Translations under genes and position numbers: made by a program | Notes under the pieces: generated by a model | Seen by the model: the letters and a program-made list of their open reading frames with translations, nothing else | Told to the model about the DNA's origin: nothing | The model's database searches: none | Assembly (NCBI RefSeq): GCF_035594765.1 | Contig: NC_085846.1 | Span: 68,187,190 to 68,251,189, forward strand | DNA: 64,000 bases | DNA from: Anolis carolinensis | Taxonomy: Eukaryota | Reading direction: 5' to 3' | In this document: positions 2,090 to 59,600 of the stretch, piece after piece | Layout: every line of letters starts with the position of its first letter | How positions within the stretch are numbered: the stretch's first letter is position 1

Positions 2090-14629
<12,540 letters not shown>

Positions 14630-14841
14630 GGCCGGCCTCCCCGAAACGACGCCTCAGGAAAAGGTCCCAGGATCCTCTGAGGCTACAAGGCAGCCGCTCT
14701 CCTCTTTGCGACTGAAGAAACTCGGCCGACAAGAGACACGTCGCCTTGAATGGCTCTTCCTGGAGTAACAGCAAAAGGCGTCCGCGGTTTGCTAAATCTC
14801 GTTGCTGAGGTTCCGGCTACAAATGGTTCCTCCCTCTATCC

Positions 14842-15036
14842 CAGGCATAGGCAAACTTGGCCCTCCAGGTGTTTTGGACTTCAACTCCCACCATTCCTAA
14901 CAGCCTCAGCCCCTTTCCTTTTCCCCCTCAGCCGCTTAAGCGGCTGAGGGGGAAAAGGAAAGGGGCTGAGGCTGTTAGGAATGGTGGGAGTTGAAGTCCA
15001 AAACACCTGGAGGGCCCAAATTTGCCCGCCATGCTG
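14842..15036. mobile_element. Palindromic hAT-type MITE
   Basis: Perfect 158-bp palindrome 14859-15016 centred on GCTTAAGC; related short MITEs at 12458-12590, 36392-36510, 45148-45419 and 49868-50003. Confidence 0.75.
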
Positions 15037-15043
15037 TAGTTTC

Positions 15044-15265
15044 TCCTGCCAACCTAGCAGTTTGAAAACATGCAAATGTGAGTAGATCAATAGATACCGC
15101 TCCGGCGGGAAGGTAACGGCGCTGCATGCAGTCATGCCGGCCACATGACCTTGGAGGTGTCTACGGACAACGCCGGCTCTTCGGCTTAGAAATGGAGATG
15201 AGCACCAACCCCCAGAGTCGGTCACGACTGGACTTAACGTCAGGGGAAAACCTTTACCTTACCTT
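15044..15265 (+). mobile_element. Sauria SINE (3' part)
   Basis: Conserved core; (ACCTTT)n tail. Confidence 0.85.
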
Positions 15266-15589
15266 GCTGTAGTTTCACAAGGCCTTTCACCATCTCTGCC
15301 CGACTTGAGCATCGCCAAACTACAACTCCCAGAGTCCCATAGATGTTTCAGACATGGCAGTAAAAGTGGTATCAAACTGCATTTATTCTACAATCTAGAT
15401 GCATCCTTGTTTGTCATTGGGATTCCACAGCATAGTTGAGGCACCTTACAAATTTGGAGGCCAGGGTTTGAATCCCTGCTCAGTCAGAGTGCCTTGGGCG
15501 AGTTGCACTCTGTCAGCCTCAGAGGAAGGCCATGGCAAAACAAAAACTTGTCAAGGAAACTCCACGATCGATGGGTTTTGACATCAAGG

Positions 15590-15830
15590 GCTTGGGCCGG
15601 GCTGTGGCGCAGGATGGTGAGCAGCCAGCTGCTGGCTGCAACAAATCACTCTGACCAAGAGGTCATGAGTTCGAGGCCAGCTTGGAGTCTGTGTTTGTCT
15701 CTGTCTCTGTTCTATGTTAAGGCATTGAATGTTTACCTTATATGTGTAATGTGATCCGCCCTGAGTCCCCTTCGGGGTGAGAAGGGCGGAATGTAAATGC
15801 TGTAAATAAATAAATAAATAAATAAATAAA
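15590..15830 (+). mobile_element. tRNA-derived SINE with L2-type tail
   Basis: Box B GAGTTCGAGGCC; tail CCGCCCTGAGTCCCCTTCGGGG...(TAAA)n; a reverse copy lies at about 13850-14073. Confidence 0.7.
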
Positions 15831-16017
15831 ACACACCTAAGGATAGAATATAGCATCATTGTGATGTGATTTTATAAGCTCTTGTGGTTTTAGTTTTAAT
15901 ATTAATGTTGTTTAAAATATTGTTTGAATATTTGTATACTACTTTTAACTAGACCTATTGCTTACACCAGCAAGAGCAGGTTATACGAGCAGGTTAATGT
16001 TTTATATGTCCTAAATA

Positions 16018-24600: not shown

Positions 24601-27600
24601 ACAATCAACCACTAAAGGAAAAGGCATGCATTTCAGAAATAAATATTTAGTGTCAGTATGGAAACTGGGTCATTGCTGGTATTATACTGTTCTGTTCCCA
24701 ATGCTTTTTAACCTTCAATGAAAAGGTGGAAGAGATCATCTGAATGCATGGGGTAGGGTGCTATTAGTATGCTGATGATACCAAAATATATTTCTCCATG
24801 CCTTCCAAAACAGCTAAGGATCACATATTTCCTCTGAATGAAAGCCTGGAGGATGTAATGGGCTGGATGAGGAAAAACAAATTGAAACTGAATTCATATA
24901 AGACAGAGGTGCTTGCCATTAAGGGTCCTAATCTGTGGATGGAGGTGTGTCAGCCAGCCCTGGATGGGTTTACATTCCTGTTGAAAGACTGTTCACAGCT
25001 TGGAAGTGCTCATGGATCTGTCTATCCAAATGTCAGCTATGGTGAGGAGTGCTTTCTACCAGCTTTGGCTGATACACCCAATCCGAGAATTAGAATAACT
25101 AAAGATGGCAGTGCATGCACTGGTAACCTCAAGGCTGGACTTCTGCAATGCATTATATATTGGGCTACTTCTGTGCCAAATTCGGAAACTCCAATTAGTT
25201 CAAAATACAGCAGCCAGACTAGTTACAGGAACATCTAGGAGTTAGTATATTAAAACCAATTAGTTATTGTGCAAAGAACAAAATGTTGGTTTGATCTTTA
25301 AAGCCCCCCATACAATGCGCATGGTACACTTTGGTCCTCTGTGGGCGGCTGCTCCAACCAGTCAAAACCCAACTGGTGACTGTCACCCACAGGACCTTTT
25401 CATCAGCTGTTCTGAGACTGTGGAATGACTTGCCAGAAGAGCTCTGACAGCTAAATGAGTTGTCAGAATTAAAAACACAACTAAAAACCCATCAAAGTTA
25501 ATGTTGATGTATTAGATTCATCTTATTTTTGTCAAGTTTTAATGTTACTCTGTCTTCCAATGTCTAACTCACAATGTCCATAGGGTCGCATTTTTCGTGA
25601 CATCACACTGTCTGAAGTAAGCCCAGTAGAGCGGTCTGCCTTGTATGTAGCTTTGATGGAAACCTTGGCCCAGCTGCACTCATTCAACATGAATTCACTT
25701 GGACTTCAAAGCTATGGAAAAGGAGCTGGCTACTGTAGGAGACAAGTAAGTGCCTAAATTCTCCACTTTATTGTATGATTTCTTGTGCTAGTATTTTGTA
25801 TGCAAACACTCTCCTTGCCATTTGAAGAAAGAATGAGTGTATTTTGCATTTCAGACATTGCAGGTTTAATTCCAAATTTGCAGGTTTAACTTTTGTGGAT
25901 TTGATTATTCACATATTTGATTAATGTCTGGTAGAAGTTGACAATACAGCTACTTTGGAAGTTCTAAAATTTCCTAAAGAGAATAACTCCATGGCCAACT
26001 TACAGAGTCACACTGGAGGGCCTAGAGATTCCTAGAGGAGTGTTACCTCAAGTGAAAACAATAGTATTTATTATTCATGCTTTTGTCACTTTCACAGTGG
26101 TGCTGCACCCCTAACACCTACTAAAAGTGAAGGGCCTGGGGTCATATGAACATCTGAATTTCCACAAAATCTGTCATTTCTTTATTTTTTGTTGCAGAAT
26201 CCCTATAGAAATAGACCTTCAGTACTGACCTTCGATGACTTTGTCAAACAATTATAAATGGATTGCCATGTCCATTTCTTCTATAAACAAACAAGGGAGT
26301 GGGTGGGAAATCTGGAACAACTCCCTCCCCAACAAATCTACGATTTCAAGTGGCGTATCCCTCCCACACACTCCATAACATGATTTATTACTACAAATCA
26401 TGCCCTATGCTTTTTGGAAGATTGCCAAACCATGATGCAATGGAGTTGAACTGATTTAGTCAGTGTCATTGGATTCAGGAGGATGTGAAAATTCTCACTG
26501 AGTTGAATAAATGCAAATTGCATATCCATTTGGATTTGTTTTTAGGTATCTGGTTGGAAAAGACAGTATAAAGCAGCTGCTCATACCGACATCCCCGCAA
26601 TGAATGAGTTGGCTGAATGGTTAATGAACCATCTCCCTTCCAATGATAATGAAGACAAGATAACCCATGGAGACTTCAGATTAGAAAACATCATATTTCA
26701 TCCACGAGAGGTATCTGTCAAGCGGCTTGTAACATTCTCAATTCTGTTTGTAGTGATGGGGAACCATTCCAAAGGTTCAGACATTGGTAGTGGTTGGGGG
26801 TTGTGGAAGCCTTAGTTAAAATGGAGGACCAAGATTCCCTTCATTTGGCATAGAGGCTTAATATCAACATAAATACAGAGGCTGAATTTACAATCCTAAT
26901 CTAAGTGCTAAATTGAAAGTGACTGAGGAAATGTCTGCGTGAAAGACCACAAGAACACTTCTCCCCCCCCCAAAAATCCAAGGATTGTTTTTTCTTTCTT
27001 TCACTAGTCTCTATTTTTGTTATGATTCCATTTTGATGGCCATACTTATATATCTCTGCTTTTTTTTACATGCTGGATGGAGCTGATGAAATAAACTTAT
27101 CTGCTTTTTCCTCTTTTCTCAATTTTGCTGCTCACACATGGTCGGTATGGGGTTCTGGAAGCAGCTTCTGTTCACCTTGCCCTTTTGTAAACATGCCGGC
27201 CACATAACCTAGGTGGCGTCTATGGACAACGCTGGCTCTTTGGCTCAGAAATGGAGATGAGCACCACCCCCAGAGTTGGACATGACTAGACTTAATGTCA
27301 GGGGAACCTTTACCTTTACCTTTTGAAATGGAGCGGTTATGGCCCAAGAATACCATAGAGTCATGCTGGAGGATATAGAAAGTGCCTAAAATGAACATGG
27401 TTTGTTGGACAAGGATAAATGAAACTACGCATAACAGTCCTTTAGATCCAGAGGGTTGTACCGTATGTGCAAATATATATGTTACAAAATTTATAACATG
27501 CATATAAATTTACTCTTTTGAGGTGGTGAATCTTTCTAAACCATTTTATAGCCAATTATTCAAAGTTTTCTTTCTGCATTTCTCCACCTCCAGACTCGTG

Positions 27601-36600: not shown

Positions 36601-39600
36601 TTGATGATGGCAGCAGCTCAAGGATATATTGAGGAAGAAGGAGGGGAAGGAAATTGATTTCCCTTTTGCCATTCCTTCTCCATCTCATCCTTACATCTTT
36701 ATAGGAGCATTGGATGCATGATGAGGAATTGTGTATGAGAGATATATCTGCAAATACACAGTCCATGCATTTTGACATGCTGCTACTCAGAGTCATGAAA
36801 GAAAGGGAGAACTAGGGACTGAAAGAACGTTTTATCTTATTCATTTCCCAGTTCGAACTAGGTTTTTCTGACAATAAAAAGGAAGCATACTGGTAATAAA
36901 ACTTGGACATTTTTGTACACTCTGTGCACAAAACACCCACCTTTTTTGCACAGAAAAATTATAACACATAGTAACACTAACATATGGAAGTAATAGTGTG
37001 TAAAGTATTTGTACTCTCTTACAGTAGTGAGATTATTTTTCCACACAGGTGAGGGGAAAACAATTGAAGAGTTTCAACCCATTCTTGTTGTGTGCCTTCA
37101 TGTTGTGTCTGACAGATGACAACCATAGAACAAAGCTATCTCGGCAAGATTTCTCTTCCTCTAAGGCTGACAGAGTGAGCCAACATGCTGTAGTGGGACA
37201 CTGGAAAACCAGGGTTTGAATCTCCACATAGAAACCTTCAGGTCACACTCTCTCAGCCCCAGAAGAAGGCAATGACAATCCTACTCTGAACAAATTCTGC
37301 CAAGAGAGCCTCATGATATGTTTGTAGGGTTGTCATAAATAAAAAATGGTTTGAAAGCACCCAACAGAGCTGACGGACTGTGACTTGACCAAGTGTATTT
37401 CTATGGTTGAGTGGAGATTAAAACCCTACTCAGCCATGGAAACCAGCTGTAGCTCTCCACCTATTATTCCATGCTGCTTCTCATCTTTTGCAGGAGCTTA
37501 CTTCATTCCTCTCCTTGCCTAGTAACCCTGATAATATTATTCTCACCTGCTACTTGCACGTGAGAAAATATTTTATTTATTTATCATGCCAGAAGCGAAC
37601 CTAGGGTACAGTACATGTGAAAAAGATCTTGGAGTCCTTGTGGACAACAAGTTAAACATGAGCCAGCAATGTGATGCAGCTGCTAAGAAAGCCAATGGGA
37701 TTTTGGCCTGCATCAATAGGGGAATAGCGTCTAGATCCAGGGAAGTCATGCTCCCCCTCTATTCTGCCTTGGTCAGACCACACCTGGAATACTGCGTCCA
37801 ATTCTGGGCACTGCAGTTGAAGGGAGATGTTGACAAGCTGGAATGCGTCCAGAGGAGGGCAACTAAAATGATCAAAGGTCTGGAGAACAAGCCCTATGAG
37901 GAGAGGCTTAAAGAGCTGGGCATGTTTAGCCTGCAGAAGAGAAGGCTAAGAGGAGACATGATAGCCATGTACAAATATGTGAGGGGAAGTCATAGGGAGG
38001 AGGGAGCAAGCTTGTTTTCTGCTGCCCTGCAGACTAGGACACGGAACAATGGCTTCAAACGACAGGAAAGGAGATTCCACCTGAACATCAGGAAGAACTT
38101 CCTCACTGTGAGGGCTGTTCGGCAGTGGAACTCTCTCCCCCGGGCCGTGGTGGAGGCTCCTTCTTTGGAGGCTTTTATAAGCAGAGGCTGGATGGCCATC
38201 TGTCGGGGGTGCTTTGAATGCGATTTCCTGCTTCTTGGCAGGGGGTTGGACTGGATGGCCCATGAGGTCTCTTCCAACTCTACTATTCTATGATTCTATG
38301 ATTCTAGTTGTAATGCATTTAAAAACACAAACAAAGTTAAAAACTTGACATACTAAATGTCCTTTGACCAGTACCTGGGCACTTGGAGTGCCTCTGGTGT
38401 TGCTATAAGATCCTCTATTGTGCATGTGGCAGGGCTCAGACTGCATTGTAATAGGTGATCTGTGGTTTGCTCTTCTCCACACTCGCATGTCGTGGACTCC
38501 ATGAGAAAAGATGAAAGTATGCTAAGTCTCTTTAGTGTGGCTTCAGAAAGAAGTGATTGATGGCCCAAGCAACAAGGCATGTTTTATACCAAAATGGTTG
38601 CGTAAGCCTCCCCTTTTCACTTGGATCATGAACGTCTAGATCAGAGGTTTCCAAAGTTTTCATGCTGGTGATGTGCTTCTTAGACATGCATCCTTTTGTG
38701 ACATACATGGCAATTCAGTTTTACTAGCAAATGGGAAGTTAAACCATCCCCTTAAAAGAGTTTCATACTATATATATAGCATATAGTACTAATATATATG
38801 TTTCATATGTTTCTGTCATTCTGCTTGATACAGAACCTGATGTTGCTTCCAGTGATGCTGCCAATATGCAATGCAGCCTTCAGAGAGATGGGGACATCTG
38901 TATTATCAATGGCAAGAAATGGTGGAGCAGTGGTAAGTCAAAAATATTTCCCATTGCAAAATGTGTTGATTCTACTACTTAGTCTATTCCTCCCATATTT
39001 TTGCATTTGCTTCACGAATGCTAGAAAGATAGACTCTGGAGAGCATATGTTTTGTTTGAACAGCGTTTGCAAACATGAAGTTCCAACTTCAGTGTTTATT
39101 TCACTCATGGATTAGCTCATATATGACTTAAATATAGAATCATCTATTTTAGTTGAAACCTGAACTCAGTTTATCTCAACCGTTCTAAAAATAATGGAGA
39201 ATTGTTTCTGAATCTTGTTATATATCCGGTGTCTCTTGGATGTAAATAAATCCAATAATGTTGGAATATGTTTTAAATATTTTAAATAATTTAAATAATT
39301 CTTGTAAATGTTTCAAAGGCTGTTTGAAAAACAGTTTTATTTAGATACAGTGTTTATGTTTTATTCTGCGTAATATAAACAAATTCCAAACAGTTTACAT
39401 CAAGCATATTTCCTACCTTTCCCTAATCGTTGAGATTCAAAACCACTTACAAAATTTAAATAAAAATGATTAAAATACATACAAAAATAGCAGTAAAACA
39501 TATAAAAGTTTTTTTTAAAAAATGCAGGTAAACAATTCATAGAGTTAAAAGACAGTATAAAAGATACAATACAAATCTTGTTTAAACATTACACATTAAC

Positions 39601-42600: not shown

Positions 42601-45600
42601 AAGTTGTGGGATTACTTTGCTCTCTATCTTTATCAGTAGGCTCAAACTTCAGTTACTTCAGGTACTAAAGTTGTATAGGAGTCATAACAGCGTTTTTAGC
42701 TTGCTCTCTGATCTAAATAAAGCTCATTCGGCAGATTTGTGTGTTTCCTTTTACATTCCAGTCCCAAGGACAAACCAATAACAGAGGAAGAAAGGAGTCT
42801 GGGGGAAGGGGATAATTATAGCCCAATTTTTTGGCTCAGAAGAAAATCCAGACATGCCTGGTCCTCCTTCCTTTTTCCTAGAAACCCTCCAGTGGATCAG
42901 ATAAAACAGCATCCTTTTTTCTGATCCAGGCTCCCAGACAAAAAATGTCAAAGGAAGAACAATAGTTTTTGAATGCTTCTGAATACCCCACTTCCCTGCT
43001 TTAAGCACATCCCACATTTTGCCTAATACAAATTGCTTGAAATAAAGTATTTGCTCTACTTGTAAATTAGGTTGTATAAACTAGATTGCATTCCAAGGGG
43101 GGGGGGGGGGGGTTCTTTTCAGAACACAACTCTCATTATATCTATGTGACCATTCTGGCAACTGATTGGGAAATTCTGGGAGCTCTAGTCCACTGAAATA
43201 AGTTATTTTTATTTTTTTATTATATTGCACTATAAGGTGTAAATAAAACATATATGTTATGCCTGTGTTGACTGGAGGTCAGATAACTCCAGGTATCCCT
43301 TTAAAAGTGACCTTACTAGAGCTACTCAGTTTAATCAACATGAAGTTTTTAATTAGCCAGTCTTTTTAGATGTCTTGGAAACTGTGGACTGCTGGAAAGA
43401 CAGATAAATGGGCCCTAGCTCAAATTAAGCCTGAACTACTCCTAGAAGCTAAGATGATTAAACTGAGACTTGTACTTGGGATACATAATGATAAGGCATA
43501 ACCAACTAGGGAAAAAACCAGTAACGCTTCATATGATGGAAGGCAGGAAGCCATAGCCCTGAATCTGAAGAACCTATTCAGGGCTGTTTATGACTTGGAA
43601 GACTGCCATTCACAGGGTCACCATAAATTAATGGCGGTTAACAACAACAGAGGAATTATTCCCAAATAATTATGCAATGAGTAGCCAAAACAGACTGAGT
43701 TTAACAGTAATCTATCTCTGCGTTTTCCAAAATGGTTGAAGACCCTGTTGTTGGTAAATTTCAGATGTTGCAAAACTTCAGATCCCATCAGTCCTGATCA
43801 ACATGGCTAGTGGTCAAAGATATTGAGATGTCCAGCAACAGGCTGGCCATTTCCTAAATAATAAGACTGCTTGTTTGTTCTGCTGACTCTTCATAGTCCA
43901 TGGGAATCTCTTCAGGTGGTATGTTCTGTTGTCTTCTCCAATAGCCATAACGTTTTGCCAGTTTCACCATATGCATTTTGAGGGATGCTCCCATAAAAAA
44001 ATACAAGAGCGGGTTCAGGCAACTATGAAACAAAGCAATGCTGTTTGTTACTTCGAATGCAACATCCATGGCTTTGCTTGCTTTGCAGTTTGTGATCAGG
44101 GGATAGATAATGTCTATGGCTCTCCAAAGTTTGATCACATTGTAGGGCAGCTGGGTGACAATAAAGACAGAAACAACTGCTGCAAGAACTTTCAGAGGCT
44201 GGGTCTTTTTAACACTGGGACTCTTGAAGAGAGCCCTGGCCACAGCTGAATAGCAGGTCAGCATGATGAAGAAAGGCAACACAAAACATAAGGCCATTTC
44301 TCCAACTTCAATTGTTACTTTAATTATTTTGCTCAGACTCTCTGGAAATGTAGAAACACATGCAATCTTGCCATGAAACTCCTTGACTTGGTTGAAAATG
44401 AGATCAGGAAGGCAAAGAAATGTACCCGCCATCCAGACAAAGAAACAGATTTTACTGCATAGTTTTGTGGTTCTTTGTTGACTTGGGGATTTGACAATGG
44501 CATTGTACCTATCCACACTGATCCAGGCCAGAAACTGCATGCTGACACTGAAGGTCATGGTGTAGATGGCAGTGGTGATTTTGCATAATGGGTTACTAAA
44601 CACCCATCCATGTACAGCATTCGTAGCCCAAAATGGAAGAGTAAAAAGCAGTAATAAATCAGCAATTGCCAAATGCATGATGTATACGTCAGTCCTGGTC
44701 TTTAGCTTCTTGATGTAGGCATAGATTGCAATCACAAGCGAATTCCCAGGAAGTCCAATAAGAAAAGCAATGGAATAAAAGGCTGGTAGAAAAGACTTGT
44801 TGAATGTTCTCACTTCTTCTTTGAGGCAAAGCATTTCATGTAAGGCATAGTCCACAGTAGCATTAGATTCATCATAATAAGAGTCGTAATATAGTTCAGA
44901 AGGGTTTGTAGCAGATTCCATGGAAGAAGCTGGCAGATGATACAAAAGGTCACTGTCATTTATATTGTGAAACATTTATGAGCATGTTTTCAATTAGTAA
45001 AGAACGCTTTCCAGATAATTTGAAAGTGAGACTCTAAATACAAATGTATTTGAATTATGCACCTTTTCTGCATGTCAGTCAAAACAAGATGAAATAATGA
45101 ATACACAGTGTTGTCAAAAATGGAAACTGCAGCAGAGTGATTTAGAACAGTGGTCCCATCCTTTGTTCCTTCATAGGTTTTGGACTTCAGCCCCCCCCCC
45201 CCCCCCAAATGAAGGTGGCTAGGGCTTCTGGGAGTTAAAGTTCAAAACACTTGAAGAAACAAAATTTGGAAACCATTGACCTAGAACAGTGGTTCTCAAC
45301 TTGTGGGTCCCCAGGTGTTTTGGCCTACAACTCCCAGAAATCTCAGCCAGTTTACCATCTGTTAGGATTTCTGGGAGCTGAAGGCCAAAACATCTGGACC
45401 CGTAGGTTGAGAACTACTGACCTATAGGAACTGGGAGAGGGGCAGGGCAAAAAAGAGGACAGTTTGTCAAGGGATCCTTGATCGCTGCCCCAGGCCTATC
45501 ATATTGGTTGCCTAGACCCCCACACAAACATGGGTTCCTGTGTAGGGCTGCGCTGACACTTCCAACATAATGTTTCATTAAGGACCCATAAACCCTTTGG

Positions 45601-50600: not shown

Positions 50601-53600
50601 AGGATTGTGTGCACTATAAATCAGTTAGGCAGCTTTCTTGGTGCCTGTTTTAAATCATTCATCTTTGTGTACCTACCAAAGCCAGTATCAGGATTCTTAG
50701 TAGTCCTTAGATTTATGTATAACTACTATATACAGGGAATATTTTTCTATGTCAGCTAGGTAAGATAGCAATAGAACACCTAGAAATCTGGACTTGTCCT
50801 TCTCTTACCTAAATCCAGGGATGGACAACTTGCGGCCCTCAGACCAATTCTGTGTCCCTCAACCCAATAACAATATCCCTCTGTAAGTAGTATTTTCAAA
50901 CCTTGTAGCAATTGGAACAGCTGGGCTGAGTTGGAGCAATAATGGAAAGAAAAAGAAGGTCTCATTCGCTTTTGACTGTGACCCCATCTATAACCAGGGA
51001 ATGGGTTTCCCAAAAAATGCTGCTCATAAGTTTGGAAATCTCTTCCATTTTTCTGGTTGTTCATGTCAGTCCATGTAAATGTATGTAAATCAAAACTTGG
51101 AGTAGATAAGAGACAAAGGACTTGCTCAAGGCCATCAACAGAAACAGAAACACAAAGCCTTCAGTATTTCTCTTTTTTTAAAATCACTACTTTGCCTGCT
51201 GTTTGCTGCATGTCCTGTATTACCCTCTCTCCCCCTTTCAGTCTTTCTGTGTTTGCAAAGGGAAAAAGAAATGAATCCACCCAGCCACCTTATTCACACA
51301 AGGCAGAATGAATTTATAGAACTTCCTCCAGTGGATGGCCACATATTTAAGTTTTTTCAAGAGGTTACGCAAAACTGGAAATTCTGAGAGTGAAATAGAA
51401 ACTACATTTCAGGCATTTGTTGTTGTTAACTGTAACTCCACCTATCATCCCTTTACTCCTCTGCCTCCACTTTAAAGGAGTAAAAAGACTCCGAGGAGCA
51501 AAACCTTTACAAGATAAGACATGTGACGTTTAGTCATTGGAGAAATAGTCATGTTGCAAAGACAAAAAAGGGGGTAGAAGAAGAATCTAGCACTAGTGGC
51601 CCTTTTAAGACTATCTTATCTATTTTTGCATGAACTTTCTTAGATTTTTCCTGCTTCTTAGCAAGGGGTTGGACTGGATGGCCCATGAGGTCTCTTCCAA
51701 CTCTACTATTCTATGATTTCAATTTAGGTATCAGATCCTTTGATAAAGTGACATTAATAGTTCAGTACAGATTGAGCATCCCATATACAGAATTCCAAAA
51801 TCCCAAACTTTGTTTCATGTGAAAATTATTTTAAAATAATAATTTTATGTTTGGGTTTAGTTCTCTGCTCCAATGTATGCATGTATATGCATATCCTGTA
51901 AAGGCATTCCAAAATCTGAAGAAAATCCAACATCCAAGACACTTCTGATTCTAAGCATTTTGGATAAGGGATACTCCAACTGTATTTGATAGTTTAAGCA
52001 GATCTTGACAGACATATATGATCTTGCACAGCTCTTTGAAGGTTTACGGCCAGGGGCACAATTTTCATCTTTTAGTTCTATATGGAAGAAATGGATTGAT
52101 ATCCTTTAAAGCACATGCTAAAGTCCCCCCTCTTTCCCACCTTTTTATGTAGTTGGGTCAGCAGCTCTTGAAGTAATTAATTAATCTGACATTACAACAC
52201 TAGCTGAGCTAGGAAAAAACCTGCTTTGATTGCAGCCTTTAGACCAGTCATTCCCAACCTGCGGTCTGTGGACCACCAGTGGTGCCCAAGAACTAAAATA
52301 TAGTCCGCAGCCTCACCATTACTACACTGTTGCAACAAGAGTGATGGGTGTTGCGAAACCCTCTATAGTGCTGAGGCAACAGGGATGTCGGGAGGAGAGA
52401 GGGTGACTACCCACGAAAGGCAAGTGACAAGCCTCCTGACTGGTGCTTCTCTTTCTCCCTCCCCCTGAGCAGAACCATTCCATATGGTGCTTGTAAGTGA
52501 GGGTACCTTGGTGTCTCCGTTTTTAGGCCTGTTCCTGGGGTTATTTGGGGTGCTGATTCCGAAGATTGCATTGGATAGACCACATTAGCTCTGGATTATT
52601 AAATATGGTTTTCTGTGGGCGAGCAGATGGCAACTATTGGATGGCATATGTTCTGTATCAGAAACTAGAGCTGATGTGGTCTATCCAATACAATTTTCTG
52701 AATCGGCACTGCAGACAATCAAACCAAATCTAAAGTGGACCAAAAACTGATTCGTTTTTGATGAGGTGACAGAGAATGGAATCCTTTCGAATCCCACCGC
52801 TGCCACCAATTTATGTGGAGATCTGATGGTGGCAGGGAATGGAATCCCTTTTAGAATCCCTCAGCTATACCACCAATATGTACAGAGGTGAGGTGTCTGA
52901 CAGGAAATGTGTGACAGAGATGGAACCTTTTCGATCCCACACACACACACACAGATACCACCACTTAATAAAGATGTTTTATGAGAGATGATGTTAAATA
53001 ATTATTTGTTTGACTATCTTCTTCTTCGCTGCCACCAATAGAAGAGACGTCAGGCAGATGGTACTGGTTCTTATAAGCTTTCTCTAGATGTTCCACTTTA
53101 GATGTTGATGTTACTTAACTTAATATAAGATTATGACAGAGGCTTGGTTAGAATAAAAACAAAACAAGTTTATTGCAAGTACAGAGCTTGATGGTTTCAT
53201 ATAACTTAGTAAAGGCACTTCGCTTAATGGTTACAAACGGTTATGAGGTGGTCAAACTTTCAAAATACTTCTTTCTCTGGATTACACTAAACCCTGATCC
53301 TCCTGGATCCCCTGGGATTAATGTTCCCTAATCCACAGACTCTATAACTGACCCTAGACAAATCACCTAACTTGCATAGTCTGGTCCAACCTAAATCTGA
53401 CTCAAATCTTTCTATTTAAGCCAGCCTGATTCTCCACACAAGAATCAGATCCTTCTCTGTGACTAGAAAATCACCAACTGCTTCTGGGTTTTAAAATATT
53501 CCCCCTCTTCCTTTCCAGGCGGCGGTTGGCTCCGCCCCTGTTGCTATGGTAACCTGTTCTAGCACTCTAAGATGGCTACCTTCCCCCATACATATTGTCA

Positions 53601-56600
53601 ACTTAAATACTCACCATTTTAAACTTAGCCAAACCTGACTGTTTAAACAAAATTAAATACACATTTCATCTATATACAAAATATAATTATACACTTCTTT
53701 ACACACCTCCCAACCCATAAAGATTATTTTTGACTTTTCTACATCCTAGAATGGTCAAAAATAATAATGTGGATTGTAATTAAAAATATACAACAATACA
53801 TATTAATACACTCTTAACATATAATATCAACACATTATCATGCAACATATATAAACACAAACCTTTATTGTTGCAACCTCTAATATGTCCTGGAAAGTGA
53901 ATCCGCTACAATGTTGTTTTTACCTTTTACATGTTTTATCTCAAAGGGGTATAAATGGTCATACTTATTTAACAATTTCTTAACTTGTTTCTGTTGACTC
54001 TGGGACAATCCCTCGTCAACTTTTACTTGCTCGCTGCTCCTATAGGCTTTCCTATTCCCTTCCGAAAAGGGAAAAGTACCTGTTTCCTCCCCCGAAATTA
54101 TCATACATACATTTACAGATCTATTTACATATGGCTTTAACATATTTACATGCACCAGCTTTTCCACATTAGACTGTTCATCATATATAGAATAGTTCAC
54201 GCCACTGTGTCTTTTGATGACTTTCCATGGTCCAGTCCAATCTACTTGGAGCTTGTTGGTCTTGGTTGGTGTAAGATACAGGACCTCATCCCCTATCTCG
54301 AAGCTCTTGCATCTGGCAGTTGAATCGTAGTGGGCTTTCTGTCTTTGCTGGGCTGTCGCTAGATGTTCTTGGGCGGTGTTCCTGGCCATTTCCATTGTTG
54401 ACTGTAGATCTTTGATGTATTTAGTTACTGAAACAGGTTCCGGTCTTGGACTTGCTTCCCAGAATTCTCGAATTAAATCAAGCGGTCCTCGCACTCGCCT
54501 CCCATACAACAATTCAAAGGGGCTATAGCCAGTGCTGTCCTGGGGAACTTCCCTATAGGCAAATAACAATTGCTGGAGCTTGATGTCCCAGTCATGTGGG
54601 TGTTGCTGACTGTAAGACTTAATCATGCGAACCAAGGTCTTATTTAAGTTTTCAACAAGGCCATTGGTTTGTGGATGATAGGCTGATGATGTCAAGTGCC
54701 TTATTCCACACAGTTCCAGCAATCTTTCCATTAATCTAGAAGTGAACTGGGTTCCCAAATCTGATACTAGTTCTTTAGGGTAACCTGTTCTTCCCCATAT
54801 TGAGAGCAGTGCATTGGCTATGGTTGTTGTCTCGATGTTTGTTAGGGCCACTGCCTCAGGATAACGAGTTGCGTAGTCAATCATAGTCAAAATATATCTG
54901 CATCCTCTCCTACTGGGTTTGGGAAGAGGACCGATGATATCTATGCCCACTCTAGAAAAAGGTTCCCCAATTAATGGCATTGGGACTAATGGAGCCTTAA
55001 GTTTATCTCTTCCTGAGCTGATTCTCTGGCATGTGTCACAGGATTGACAAAACCTTTTAATTTGCTGGTACATGCCAGGCCAAAAGAAATTTTTAGTAAT
55101 CCTTTGAGTGGTCCATCTAATTCCTAAATGTCCCCCTTGTGGGCTGTCATGGGCTACCTCCATCAACTGTTCTCTATACTTCTGAGGTACCACAATCTGC
55201 GTATAGGAAGCGGACATCTCTGGGGCTTTTTGATTTAAAACTTCCCTGTACAAAACTCCATTTTTACTAATAAATCTGGTGGGCTTTTCTAAAGTTAAAT
55301 CTCCCTCAGTGTTTTGGGCTTGCTCAAACAAAGGCTGCAATGTGTCATCAGACTTTTGCTCCTTTAGGATTTCTCCTTCCCCTTCAGTCTTATTTACCAA
55401 ATCAGCCATTACAGAACTTGCCTCAGGATTTTCCTCTAAGTTCTGTTGTATAGGTAAACAGATAACTTCTTTATCAGATTTTTCCTCTATACATTCACCC
55501 TCATTAAGAGTCTTTGGTAACTTTTTGACTTCTCTGGCAAGGTCATTACCAATTAGGCATTTATATGGAATATCAGAACTAATAGCAAAGTCCCATACTC
55601 CTTCCCACTTGCCATATTGAACAGGTAAAGAAACCACTTCGCTTGGGATCACGGGACCCAAACCTTTTAAATTAACTTGATAAGTAGGGTGTTGGCATTT
55701 TGATGGTACTAATTCAGGTCTAATGATACAGACTTCTGAACCTGTGTCCCTCCATCCCTGTATTTGGTTTCCATCAATGTTGATGTTTTCCAAATATTCA
55801 TCTGATGTTTGATCTAACAAAACAAACAGACATTGCCTCTCCTTTTGAATTTCCTGAGGTAAATCTTTTTGAACCTTAGCTGGTTCCTTAGTTGCCTCTT
55901 TGGTTGGGACTTTCTTAACATAGAAAGAGGGTTTTTCTTTCTTTAAAAGACCACATTGTGACCTATAATGTCCTGTTTTACCACAGTGAAAGCATCGAAT
56001 ATTTCCCTCCATTTTGGCAGGGTTCATTACACTAGCCATCCTCCAGGTGGTGTTTTCTATGGAAGCTCCTCTCCCTTGCTGTGCGCGCGTGAGGGAAAAA
56101 GATGGCTGTTTAAACTGTTTTTCCTTAAATCCTCCTTCTTCCCTTTTAAAACCTTCCTTCAATGTAATTAGTTGGTCCACCATCCCAGCTGCTTGATTAG
56201 CAGTCTGAGGCTTTCTATCTTGTACCAGCCATCGATAATCTGATGGAACTTGCTGGTATAGCTGCTCTAATTTTATTAAATCCTTCAGCTGCTGGAAGTC
56301 TTTTACCTCAGAATTCCTCAACCAACTCTCAAAATATTGTGCCTGTTTGGCAGCTAGTTGTAGGAAACTTTCATTTTTCTCTCTCCTCAGTGTTCTGAAT
56401 TTTGTTCTATAAAATTCAGGAGTTAGCTGTAACCTTTGTTGTACCAGCTGTTTAAATATGGTGTAATTTCTGCGTTCTTCTTCCACCATTTCGCTATAGA
56501 TCTCCAATAGCTTTCCACAAATCTGTGGCCTGAGGTAAATCATCCAATTTTCCTCAGCTATTTCCAGATCTTTACAACACCATTCAAACGAAATTAAAAA

Positions 56601-59600
56601 CTGCTCCACATCATCCTCCTTGTTGTATTTAGGAAACCTCTTTAAGGCTGAATCAACAGGATTAATGATGGGAGTCCCTGGTTGTGCCTCCCCAGAAGGC
56701 TGAGACAGTGTCAGCTTCTGTTTTTCCCATTCAATCTCCATCCTTCTCATCTCTATCTCTGCCTGTCTCCGTTTCTCTTCTGCTTGTCTCTCTTTATCTT
56801 TTTCGTCTGCTTCTTTCTCCAATTTCATCTTCTCCATCTGTGCCTGTCTCTGTCTTTCTTTCTCCTGTGCTTCTGCCTGTCTCTCTCTCTCTCCTGTGCT
56901 TCTAATTCTAATTTCCTCATCTCTAATTGATATTTCATCATTGCTTCTGACATGGTGGTCTGTTGTTCCGAATCTGAACTCTCTTCCTCTTGGTACACCT
57001 CTACCTCTCCTGCTCCTCTTTTCTGCTTTCTGGTGGCCATTCTTTATAACTTTTACCTCAGAAATTTTAATGAGCGATCTCAGGCACCAAATTAGGGATG
57101 TTATACGTATCCCGCCGCTTGCCGCCAATTTATGTAGAGAGGTGATGGGGTGACAGAGAATGGAATCCTTTCGAATCCCACCGCTGCCACCAATTTATGT
57201 GGAGATCTGATGGTGGCAGGGAATGGAATCCCTTTTAGAATCCCTCAGCTATACCACCAATATGTACAGAGGTGAGGTGTCTGACAGGAAATGTGTGACA
57301 GAGATGGAACCTTTTCGATCCCACACACACACACACAGATACCACCACTTAATAAAGATGTTTTATGAGAGATGATGTTAAATAATTATTTGTTTGACTA
57401 TCTTCTTTTTCGCTGCCACCAATAGAAGAGACGTCAGGCAGATGGTACTGGTTCTTATAAGCTTTCTCTAGTTGTTCCACTTTAGATGTTGATGTTACTT
57501 AACTTAATATAAGATTATGACAGAGGCTTGGTTAGAATAAAAACAAAACAAGTTTATTGCAGGTACAGAGCTTGATGGTTTCATATAACTTAGTAAAGGC
57601 ACTTCGCTTAATGGTTACAAACGGTTATGAGGTGGTCAAACTTTCAAAATACTTCTTTCTCTGGATTACACTAAACCCTGATCCTCCTGGATCCCCTGGG
57701 ATTAATGTTCCCTAATCCACAGACTCTATAACTGACCCTAGACAAATCACCTAACTTGCCTAGTCTGGTCCAACCTAAATCTGACTCAAATCTTTCTATT
57801 TAAGCCAGCCTGATTCTCCACACAAGAATCAGATCCTTCTCTGTGACTAGAAAATCACCAACTGCTTCTGGGTTTTAAAGTATTCCCCCTCTTCCTTTCC
57901 AGGCGGCGGTTGGCTCCGCCCCTGTTGCTATGGTAACCTGTTCTAGCACTCTAAGATGGCTACCTTCCCCCATACATATTGTCAACTTAAATACTCACCA
58001 TTTTAAACTTAGCCAAACCTGACTGTTTAAACAAAATTAAATACACATTTCATCTATATACAAAATATAATTATACACTTCTTTACACAAAGTTTGGGAA
58101 CCACTGCTTTAGACTTTGAGATCCTGAGATTTGTAATTCCCTCTTACCCCAAAAGTGCTTCTCTGGATTTGGAAATTACCCGTTCTCTGACTTTTTTCAG
58201 ACAATCTCTCAGCCCCTAAAGACGGTTTCTATAAGTAAATGAAGGATGAATAGTAAGCAAGGAAAAAGCATTGAAGTGACTCTTGTGCAACTGTGTTGTC
58301 GAAGGCTTTCATGGCCAGGATCACAGGGTTGTTATATGTCTTTCGGGCTGTGTGGCCATGTTCCAGAAGTATTCTCTCCTGACGTTTCGCCCACATCTAT
58401 GGCAGGCATCCTCAGAGGTTGTGAGGCATGGATAAACTAGGCAAGGAAGGCAACTGATTTGCATTTTGGTTGATGATACACTGCTCTGAACTGAAGGGAG
58501 AAGAATACCAGAAAAGAAATGGGGAAAACAACGTTGTGTTGATGTAATAAAAATCAGTGCATGCATACCAGAGTTCTGACCCAGAGATGTGGATAAATAA
58601 AGAGAAAAAAGAAATGAAGAATATAGCAGTCTCAATTGCTAGCATAAGATCAAGAACTGTGCTGAAAATATTTCTTCCATTAAGTTCCTTTGTTTATTTT
58701 TCAAATAACAAGCAGATTGTTTTTTGTTGTTTTACCCTTAAAAAGGTTCTTTGTCATACTTTCTGTGTACACAAAGAATGACACAGATCTGTTACTTTAA
58801 ATAAATATTGACATTAGCAGAATTTATCTCCACTGACCTTCACTTTTGTTATTGTCTTGGTTTTCTAGATTATTTCCATGGTGGACATTTTGAAGTTCAT
58901 TTTAACAATGTTTGTGTGCCTGCCTCCAATTTGATACTTGGTGAGTATTTATTTTCTTGACAAAACCTGGGAAGCTTTGTGAACATCTGTAGGTAGGAGG
59001 AGCTTCGCCAGGTTTATATCTACAGTTCTGTTGGGCAGTTCAGGACTTTGAATTAAACTTCATGCCACATTTAGTGCACAGCTAAATTTCACTAGAGCCA
59101 AGGTGACATAGTAGTTTGAGTATTGGACTACAGCTCTGGACATTAGTGTTCGAATCCCCACTTAGCCATGGGAGCCTACTGGATAAAGATTCCACCTGAA
59201 CATTAGGCAGAACTTCCTAACTGTAAGAGCTGTTCAGCAGTGGAACTCTCTGCCCCCGAGTGGTGGTGGAGGCTCCTTCTTTGGAGGCTTTTAAACAGAG
59301 GCTGGATGGCCATCTGTCGGGGCTGCTTTGAATGCATTTTTCCTGCTTCTTGGCAGGGGGTTGGACTGGATGTCCCATGAACTCTCCTCCAATTCTATGA
59401 TTCTGTTATTCTAAGTCATATTTTCTCAGCCTCAAAATTAGACTTACTGGCACACTTTTCCAAGAAAACCCTGTGACAGCTTCTTCTCTGGTCACCATAA
59501 GTCAGAAACTACTTTAAGGCATACAACAACAAGAGTATTTTAGCTAAACTAGGTACTTTATTTTTGGGTGGGCTATTTTGCATGGGTACGTGGCACAAGC

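Follow-up and report, generated by a model that had tools for sequence, protein, structure and literature searches.

This study concerns a long terminal repeat (LTR) retrotransposon in a 64,000-nucleotide stretch of the Anolis carolinensis genome (hereafter the window), where it occupies positions 52759-58089 on the minus strand, corresponding to 68,239,948-68,245,278 of CM069372.1 (GCA_035594765.1, rAnoCar3.1; record coordinate = window coordinate + 68187189). The element is of the Gmr1-like type of Ty3/mdg4 (Gypsy) elements; its reverse transcriptase (RT) and RNase H (RH) are missing through one in-frame deletion, and the junction of this deletion was found on three chromosomes. It is very probably a non-autonomous, trans-mobilised deletion derivative of an active A. 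carolinensis Gmr1-like element, with RT and RNase H provided by its relatives.

A first-pass annotation, made from the letters of the window, had described a young Gmr1-type element with LTRs differing at about 6 of 947 positions. This count was exact: the two LTRs, 947 bp apiece, show six mismatches and no gaps (0.63%), the protease (PR) precedes the integrase (IN) and the capsid is of the SCAN type. The stop-free frame running from capsid through CCHC knuckle and DTG protease to a complete integrase was likewise recovered, with all of the listed motifs located and Pfam in agreement. Pfam profiles applied to the 1082-codon open reading frame (ORF), whose residue numbering is used here, placed SCAN at 237-321, zf-CCHC at 378, RVP at 448-535, Integrase_H2C2 at 647-703, rve at 723-819 and Integrase_p58_C/SH3 at 954-1001. 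The integrase motifs lie at 55151-55029 (HH..CC), 54947, 54767 and 54665 (D/D/E) and 54236-54219 (GPW) in window coordinates. No Pfam match to RVT_1 or RNase H was obtained in this ORF, from which the Y.DD motif is also absent.

The loss of RT and RNase H by a single in-frame deletion, as had been proposed, could be delimited by comparison with P0131, an annotated anole protein of 1449 amino acids with an intact gag-PR-IN-RT-RH organization. Residues 1010-1426 of P0131 are missing from the window, amounting to 417 codons or 1251 nt, and these span RVT_1 and both RNase H models of P0131. Where P0131 continues ..KYDHL FSDLPGRV.., the window jumps to the tail of RNase H; the direct join expected by the first-pass annotation was thus located at 53952/53951, whereas the retained tail comprises 23 residues rather than the estimated 25 or so. 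RT and RNase H come last in the Gmr1 order, and one deletion therefore leaves a continuous gag-PR-IN frame.

The same junction was encountered in two annotated proteins, P0121 at locus L001 (CM069368.1, 81.49 Mb) and P0135 at locus L004 (CM069370.1, 138.17 Mb), so that together with the window three chromosomes carry it. The loci were found through annotated proteins of 288-1893 amino acids, and the count of three copies, including the window, is a lower bound; no candidates carrying the junction were found among short proteins (83-262 amino acids). A 17-nt string across the junction is identical in the window, L001 and L004 and is missing from L002, a full-length copy, and from L003, a locus of a related subfamily. 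Furthermore, a T>C change (Ser>Pro) 4 nt downstream of the junction occurs in all three deleted copies and in neither L002 nor L003, and likewise, 24 nt upstream of the junction, element position 4114 is an A in all three deleted copies and in no full-length copy. The flanks of the three loci are mutually unrelated. Within a copy the two LTRs are 0.63% (window) or 1.13% (L001) apart, while between copies the LTRs differ by 5-7% and the coding sequence by about 3%; the LTRs within a copy are therefore far closer than those between copies, which identifies the three as separate insertions from diverged sources and not as one duplicated locus.

A partner containing RT and belonging to the same LTR family, as anticipated in the first-pass annotation, is present in the same genome. 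P0131 is 92% identical to the window protein over the whole alignment, with the differences concentrated in the out-of-frame N-terminus, and its Pfam matches (RVP 398-485, integrase 597-949, RVT_1 1074-1233 and RNase H 1298-1427) follow the order PR-IN-RT-RH. At the nucleotide level, L002 (7118-13457 of its locus) is a full-length copy bordered by a 5-bp target-site duplication (TSD), GTAAT, with RT and RNase H exactly at the junction point of the window; the positions that meet at this junction are about 1247 nt apart in L002. Its LTR is 93% identical to that of the window copy, the polypurine tract (PPT) is the same and the primer-binding site (PBS) nearly so. The two LTRs of L002 itself show no mismatches in 680 aligned sites, which dates the latest activity of the family to very recent times. 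Its ORF is not intact, however, being interrupted by a premature stop in gag and by a frameshift that lies between RT and RNase H, and its 3' LTR lacks about 271 bp present in its 5' LTR. The two ORF lesions either arose in the last replication cycle or belonged to a defective genome mobilised by the proteins of other copies; the coexistence of identical LTRs with a stop and a frameshift suggests that defective genomes are being mobilised in this family now.

A further link between deleted and full-length genomes is found at L001. After the junction (12587-12720 of this locus) there are 82 extra nucleotides, consisting of a 32-nt repeat of the tail and about 50 nt of RNase H sequence; the latter segment is absent from the window and L004 type, and it is followed by a tail of the full-length type. 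L001 thus contains tandem tails, one of the deleted type (TACCCC) and one of the full-length type (TACTCC), and a deleted genome must therefore have served as template. The gene model P0121 splices out this extra segment. The simplest origin of the insert would be a non-homologous template switch between deleted and full-length RNA in one particle, of which it may be a trace.

The following course of events would account for these observations. A single 1251-nt in-frame deletion would have taken out all of RT and RNase H while sparing the LTRs, the PBS, the PPT and the gag-PR-IN frame, and would have arisen once in an RNA or cDNA genome. The deleted variant would then have been transcribed, packaged and reverse-transcribed several times with the RT and RNase H of full-length relatives, probably inside particles common to deleted and full-length genomes, and would have given new insertions on at least three chromosomes. 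The deleted allele would circulate and recombine within the full-length pool and would not form a separate diverging family.

Several points weigh against this interpretation. A verifiable TSD was found at none of the three deleted copies, and the 3' LTR is 10 bp short in the window, truncated in L001 and missing in L004. The deleted form is a minority among the annotated proteins of the family, with two such proteins against about 12 that read through into RT, and the junction-bearing loci number only three in a census made by annotated proteins. The intact ORF of P0131 is known from the older annotation. Alternatively to a template switch, L001 with its extra segment could represent an earlier stage, and a repeat-mediated deletion would then have produced the simple junction from it. 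Finally, the provision of RT in trans, co-packaging and recombination by template switching are inferred.

Among the other explanations, the one that survives best is a semi-autonomous lineage, in which the element's own Gag, protease and integrase are favoured in cis and kept by selection on the deleted elements, with RT and RNase H borrowed. Consistent with this idea, 1082 codons are free of stops with every catalytic motif intact, and the coding sequence bears a strong synonymous bias. The ratio of non-synonymous to synonymous divergence (dN/dS) over gag-PR-IN is 0.10-0.14 for every pair of copies, deleted against deleted included, at a synonymous divergence (dS) of 0.10-0.13; among the three deleted copies it is 0.10-0.14 (dS 0.11-0.13), also in gag, PR and IN taken separately, the synonymous excess having a binomial p < 1e-18. 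Changes private to the window number 25 synonymous and 10 non-synonymous. These ratios lie far below 1, and unselected, exchange-free drift since the deletion is therefore rejected. However, the bias is equally seen against the full-length copy, and it extends to two segments that should drift freely in such a lineage, the pre-RT linker and the RNase H tail; exchange with full-length genomes that are themselves under selection could produce the synonymous bias just as well. In addition, the three four-taxon site patterns that exclude one another have counts of 27, 19 and 18 and are arranged in blocks, and the deleted copies form no clade when L003 is used as outgroup, the signals being in conflict in a four-copy tree that is too small to test a single clade. 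Their LTRs are no nearer to one another than to L002 and share no common subtype, and upstream of the junction only two fixed sites distinguish deleted from full-length copies. The window gag ATG is out of frame, and the ORFs of L001 and L004 carry frameshifts and stops. A lineage maintained by its own proteins is therefore unlikely.

The mosaic sites, together with the RNase H segment of L001, appear to point to recombination with full-length genomes. Two proposals of the first-pass annotation find less support: the deleted copies do not behave as a separate non-autonomous family, since neither in LTRs nor in coding sequence are they nearer to one another than to full-length copies and the sites are mosaic, and the supply by the element of its own particle and integrase is a possibility only, given that recombination can explain the bias and that the gag ATG of the window copy is out of frame. 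On balance, the data favour a deletion allele that is carried along in a recombining pool rather than one that uses its own Gag and integrase. More speculatively, and with the probability still against it, an RT-less gag-PR-IN genome may be a stable 'cheater' allele in a recombining population of vertebrate germ-line retrotransposons, co-assembling and exchanging sequence with full-length genomes and kept at intermediate frequency since its own Gag and integrase may serve the shared particles. If this is true, the L001 chimera is a fossil of a heterodimeric particle.

Two further explanations are highly improbable. The deletion might have been remade repeatedly from full-length RNA by a splicing or template-switch hot spot, each copy being dead on arrival. 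The deleted copies are indeed as near to the full-length copy as to one another, and anole Gmr1-like elements seem often to have internal deletions (L003 and P0136). However, a splicing origin was rejected on the lack of GT..AG at the breakpoints, the microhomology is 1 nt only, the T>C change and the A at 4114 are common to the three deleted copies and missing from full-length ones, and the tandem tails of L001 require a deleted template. Equally, ectopic gene conversion between dispersed genomic copies might have spread the deletion in place of retrotransposition, a process for which mosaic site patterns would be expected just as well. However, the LTRs of the window copy, 0.63% apart, are 6-7% from those of every other copy, which fits a fresh insertion from an unsampled source, and the 1.25-kb gap would have to move between chromosomes three times. 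A single loss after the insertion or, alternatively, a collapsed assembly at the window locus, for which the a priori frequency of such events is what speaks (the window, being 100% identical to the public assembly, gives no independent check), is excluded for practical purposes by the shared junction and substitution on two other chromosomes with unrelated flanks and different secondary lesions, so that, in line with the first-pass annotation, the deletion predates the insertion and the junction is not unique to this locus.

The preferred reading therefore remains that of a deletion derivative copied in trans within the full-length pool. The coordinates of the element are collected below.

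Features of the RT-less Gmr1-like element in the window (coordinates of the 64,000-nucleotide stretch)
Feature	Position	Strand	Remarks
5' LTR	57143..58089	(-)	947 bp by repeat definition
65-bp tandem array, 2.6 units	57109..57275	(-)	Crosses U5/PBS boundary
PBS	57106..57127	(-)	Starts TGGCGGCAAGCGG; 5 nt past LTR end TCTCTACA
Long open frame, 1082 codons, stop-free	53880..57128	(-)	gag-protease-integrase-pre-RT linker-RNase H tail
Canonical gag ATG (MATRKQKRG..)	57038..57040	(-)	Out of frame with long ORF in window copy
(GA)n tract, hypervariable gag coiled-coil	56878..56894	(-)	Frame of window copy shifted by 1 nt against L001, L004 and L002
Capsid C-terminal domain (Pfam SCAN)	56166..56420	(-)	E = 6e-12, above gathering score
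CCHC zinc knuckle	55953..55994	(-)	Pfam and motif
Aspartic protease (RVP)	55524..55787	(-)	DTG at 55751-55737
Integrase (H2C2, DDE core, C-terminal SH3/p58_C and GPW)	54126..55190	(-)	Pfam and motifs
Pre-RT linker, ends ..LLNKYDHL	53952..54125	(-)	Comparison with full-length copies
Deletion junction ..KYDHL/YPFEIKH..	53951..53952	(-)	1-nt microhomology
Last 23 RNase H codons	53883..53951	(-)	Stop codon at 53880-53882
Polypurine tract GGGTTGGGAGG	53706..53716	(-)	Adjoins 3' LTR
3' LTR	52759..53705	(-)	947 bp

The LTRs have TG..CA ends, with the PBS following the 5' LTR and the PPT preceding the 3' LTR. Judged from the TSD-defined LTR end of L002, the 5' LTR probably extends 10 bp further, to 57133. 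The terminal 10 bp that are expected from L002 and from the sequence after the 5' LTR are missing from the 3' LTR of the window copy, and because of this a small deletion at the edge of the 3' LTR seems likely. No matching 4-6-mer was found as a TSD around the window copy under several definitions of the LTR boundaries, and neither the window nor the compared loci contain a paralogous empty site for the flanks of the element. About 50 bp from its 3' end there is a long hairpin or inverted repeat at 52548-52712 (arms at about 52550-52592 and 52667-52709), for which the Rfam matches were sub-threshold and on both strands. This hairpin may be a miniature inverted-repeat transposable element, and it may have to do with the lack of a TSD and with the shortened end of the LTR.

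The U5 ends of both LTRs (57109-57275 and 52759-52891) are composed of tandem units of about 65 bp, each closed by a PBS-like motif. An 18-mer in U5, at 57192-57175 and 52808-52791, is identical in both LTRs of the window copy and of L002 and looks perfectly complementary to the 3' end of a tRNA (acceptor arm plus CCA), over 23 nt if the T-arm is included; the tRNA that it resembles is presumably tRNA-Leu. The PBS that actually follows the LTR is an imperfect variant of this motif, and in the window it is 1 nt longer, by an insertion, than in the full-length L002; the deleted copy L004 has the same insertion. ARAGORN found no tRNA gene in the 64-kb window from which the primer could be identified. 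According to a review, the PBS is the predicted binding site of lizard SCAN zinc-finger proteins on Gmr1-like elements (PMC4592553), and variation of the PBS might matter in this light.

The window copy is the best preserved of the deleted copies, yet it is not flawless. An indel in the (GA)n tract at about 56894-56878 puts the canonical gag ATG out of frame, and the first in-frame ATG of the long ORF is at 56837; an assembly error in the dinucleotide run may possibly underlie the out-of-frame ATG. The N-terminal coiled-coil of Gag (56745-56900 and the same region of L001, L002 and L004) is encoded by purine-rich repeats of 21-29 bp and has a different length in every one of these copies, with indels of 12 to 60 nt. 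The window ORF has no exact match among the annotated proteins from any of 11 possible starts, and this copy is thus unannotated as a protein.

The proteins nearest to that of the window are all from A. carolinensis, and the nearest of the wider relatives occur in frogs, turtles, echinoderms and molluscs. The closest cluster (P0001) comprises 15 anole proteins with 88-97% identity to the window protein. Several 'genes' of the anole, LOC134296091 and LOC134298646 among them, are copies of the element, which is relevant to annotation. At L003 (5625-13414), a tandem LTR-internal-LTR-internal-LTR array of a related subfamily is present with LTRs that are 75-83% identical; its internal part keeps RT and RNase H and lacks gag, PR and the N-terminal half of IN, which is the opposite type of deletion, and the two internal units are 0.19% apart. 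In P0136 (LOC134295999) the pre-RT linker is joined straight to the middle of RT, reflecting either a different internal deletion or an artefact of the gene model. P0007, P0009 and P0010 belong to other Anolis Gmr1-like families; 'trichohyalin-like' models of the P0009 type were set aside as chimeric, since they combine gag-PR of a second family with unrelated sequence and a 46-amino-acid integrase fragment. The idea of an RT-less strategy recurring across phyla was dropped: many Gmr1-like proteins of other animals are without an RT domain, but they end in early RT or at the end of IN, lack an RNase H tail and are truncated predictions.

Positions 33854-54921 of the window are 100% identical to L005, the locus of an annotated receptor gene. 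An intronless ACKR4 gene (atypical chemokine receptor 4) lies at 43857-44921 on the minus strand, 8 kb from the element, and the annotated protein of 355 amino acids matches it exactly; a 373-amino-acid form is not on record among annotated proteins. ACKR4 is nested in a large gene of the opposite strand with APH and acyl-CoA dehydrogenase domains (ACAD10/11-like), and the element is antisense within the span of this gene model, presumably in an intron. An ORF of 235 amino acids at 37586-38293 (plus strand) has no Pfam match; we take it to resemble the C-terminal part of ORF2 of a CR1-type long interspersed element. Another repeat-like ORF occurs at 24798-25238 (plus strand), and the stretch 14000-16000 is GC-rich (49%) and may be a CpG island.

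The assignment of the element to the Gmr1-like clade is based on domain order and on the SCAN domain, since the window copy, being without RT, cannot be placed by RT phylogeny. The order PR-IN-RT-RH, which is that of Gmr1-like elements (bioRxiv 10.1101/2025.03.03.638093), is present in P0131, and in the window PR comes before IN and the RNase H tail follows. All relatives of the full-length partner have the Gmr1 order of domains as well. A capsid C-terminal domain homologous to SCAN, as identified by Pfam in the window, has been described for Gmr1-like elements (bioRxiv 10.1101/2025.03.03.638093; PMC4592553). These elements have been stated to be depleted in reptiles (10.1101/2025.03.03.638093), with which the recent activity in this lizard stands in contrast. 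SCAN and integrase domains are also shared with domesticated Gmr1-like or GIN-type genes (GIN1 and SCAN-domain genes), and relatives of the element are named 'Gypsy retrotransposon integrase-like protein 1' in databases; however, the anole element is multi-copy, flanked by LTRs, equipped with PBS and PPT and located at non-orthologous sites, and a domesticated host gene was rejected on the presence of LTRs and of several dispersed copies.

In replication-defective retroviruses, mini-Ty1 and BARE2-type elements, defective genomes are carried in helper particles, and co-packaged RNAs recombine. The anole case differs, being set in a vertebrate germ line and short of the polymerase itself, and it is known from sequence. 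Among LTR retrotransposons, the non-autonomous ones make up a continuum of derivatives (PMC13570524), and Tos17 is an active element without gag (PMC3977881); the trans-mobilised defective category is well known in plants, yeast and retroviruses (PMC13570524, PMC3977881 and other cases), and the element leaves the current understanding of LTR retrotransposons unchanged. It resembles TRIM, LARD, TR-GAG and other 'defective' derivatives, as well as Tos17, in that it retains LTRs, PBS and PPT, is short of an essential function and needs an autonomous partner. An essential function absent, the same defect at several sites and a matching partner in the genome are what characterize a trans-mobilised derivative, and all three were found here. 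However, TRIM and LARD are non-coding and TR-GAG retains gag only, whereas the anole element keeps gag, PR and IN in one frame and lacks RT-RH only, and with PR and IN retained it falls outside those classes. Furthermore, unlike derivatives of this type, it has not diverged from its partner and recombines with it. It offers a breakpoint-level case from a reptile in which the genome of a defective LTR retrotransposon has very probably been copied in trans, the L001 chimera and the mosaic copies being probable traces left by co-packaged genomes that recombined, and its RT-less gag-PR-IN form is a natural system for studying the cis versus trans action of retrotransposon proteins.

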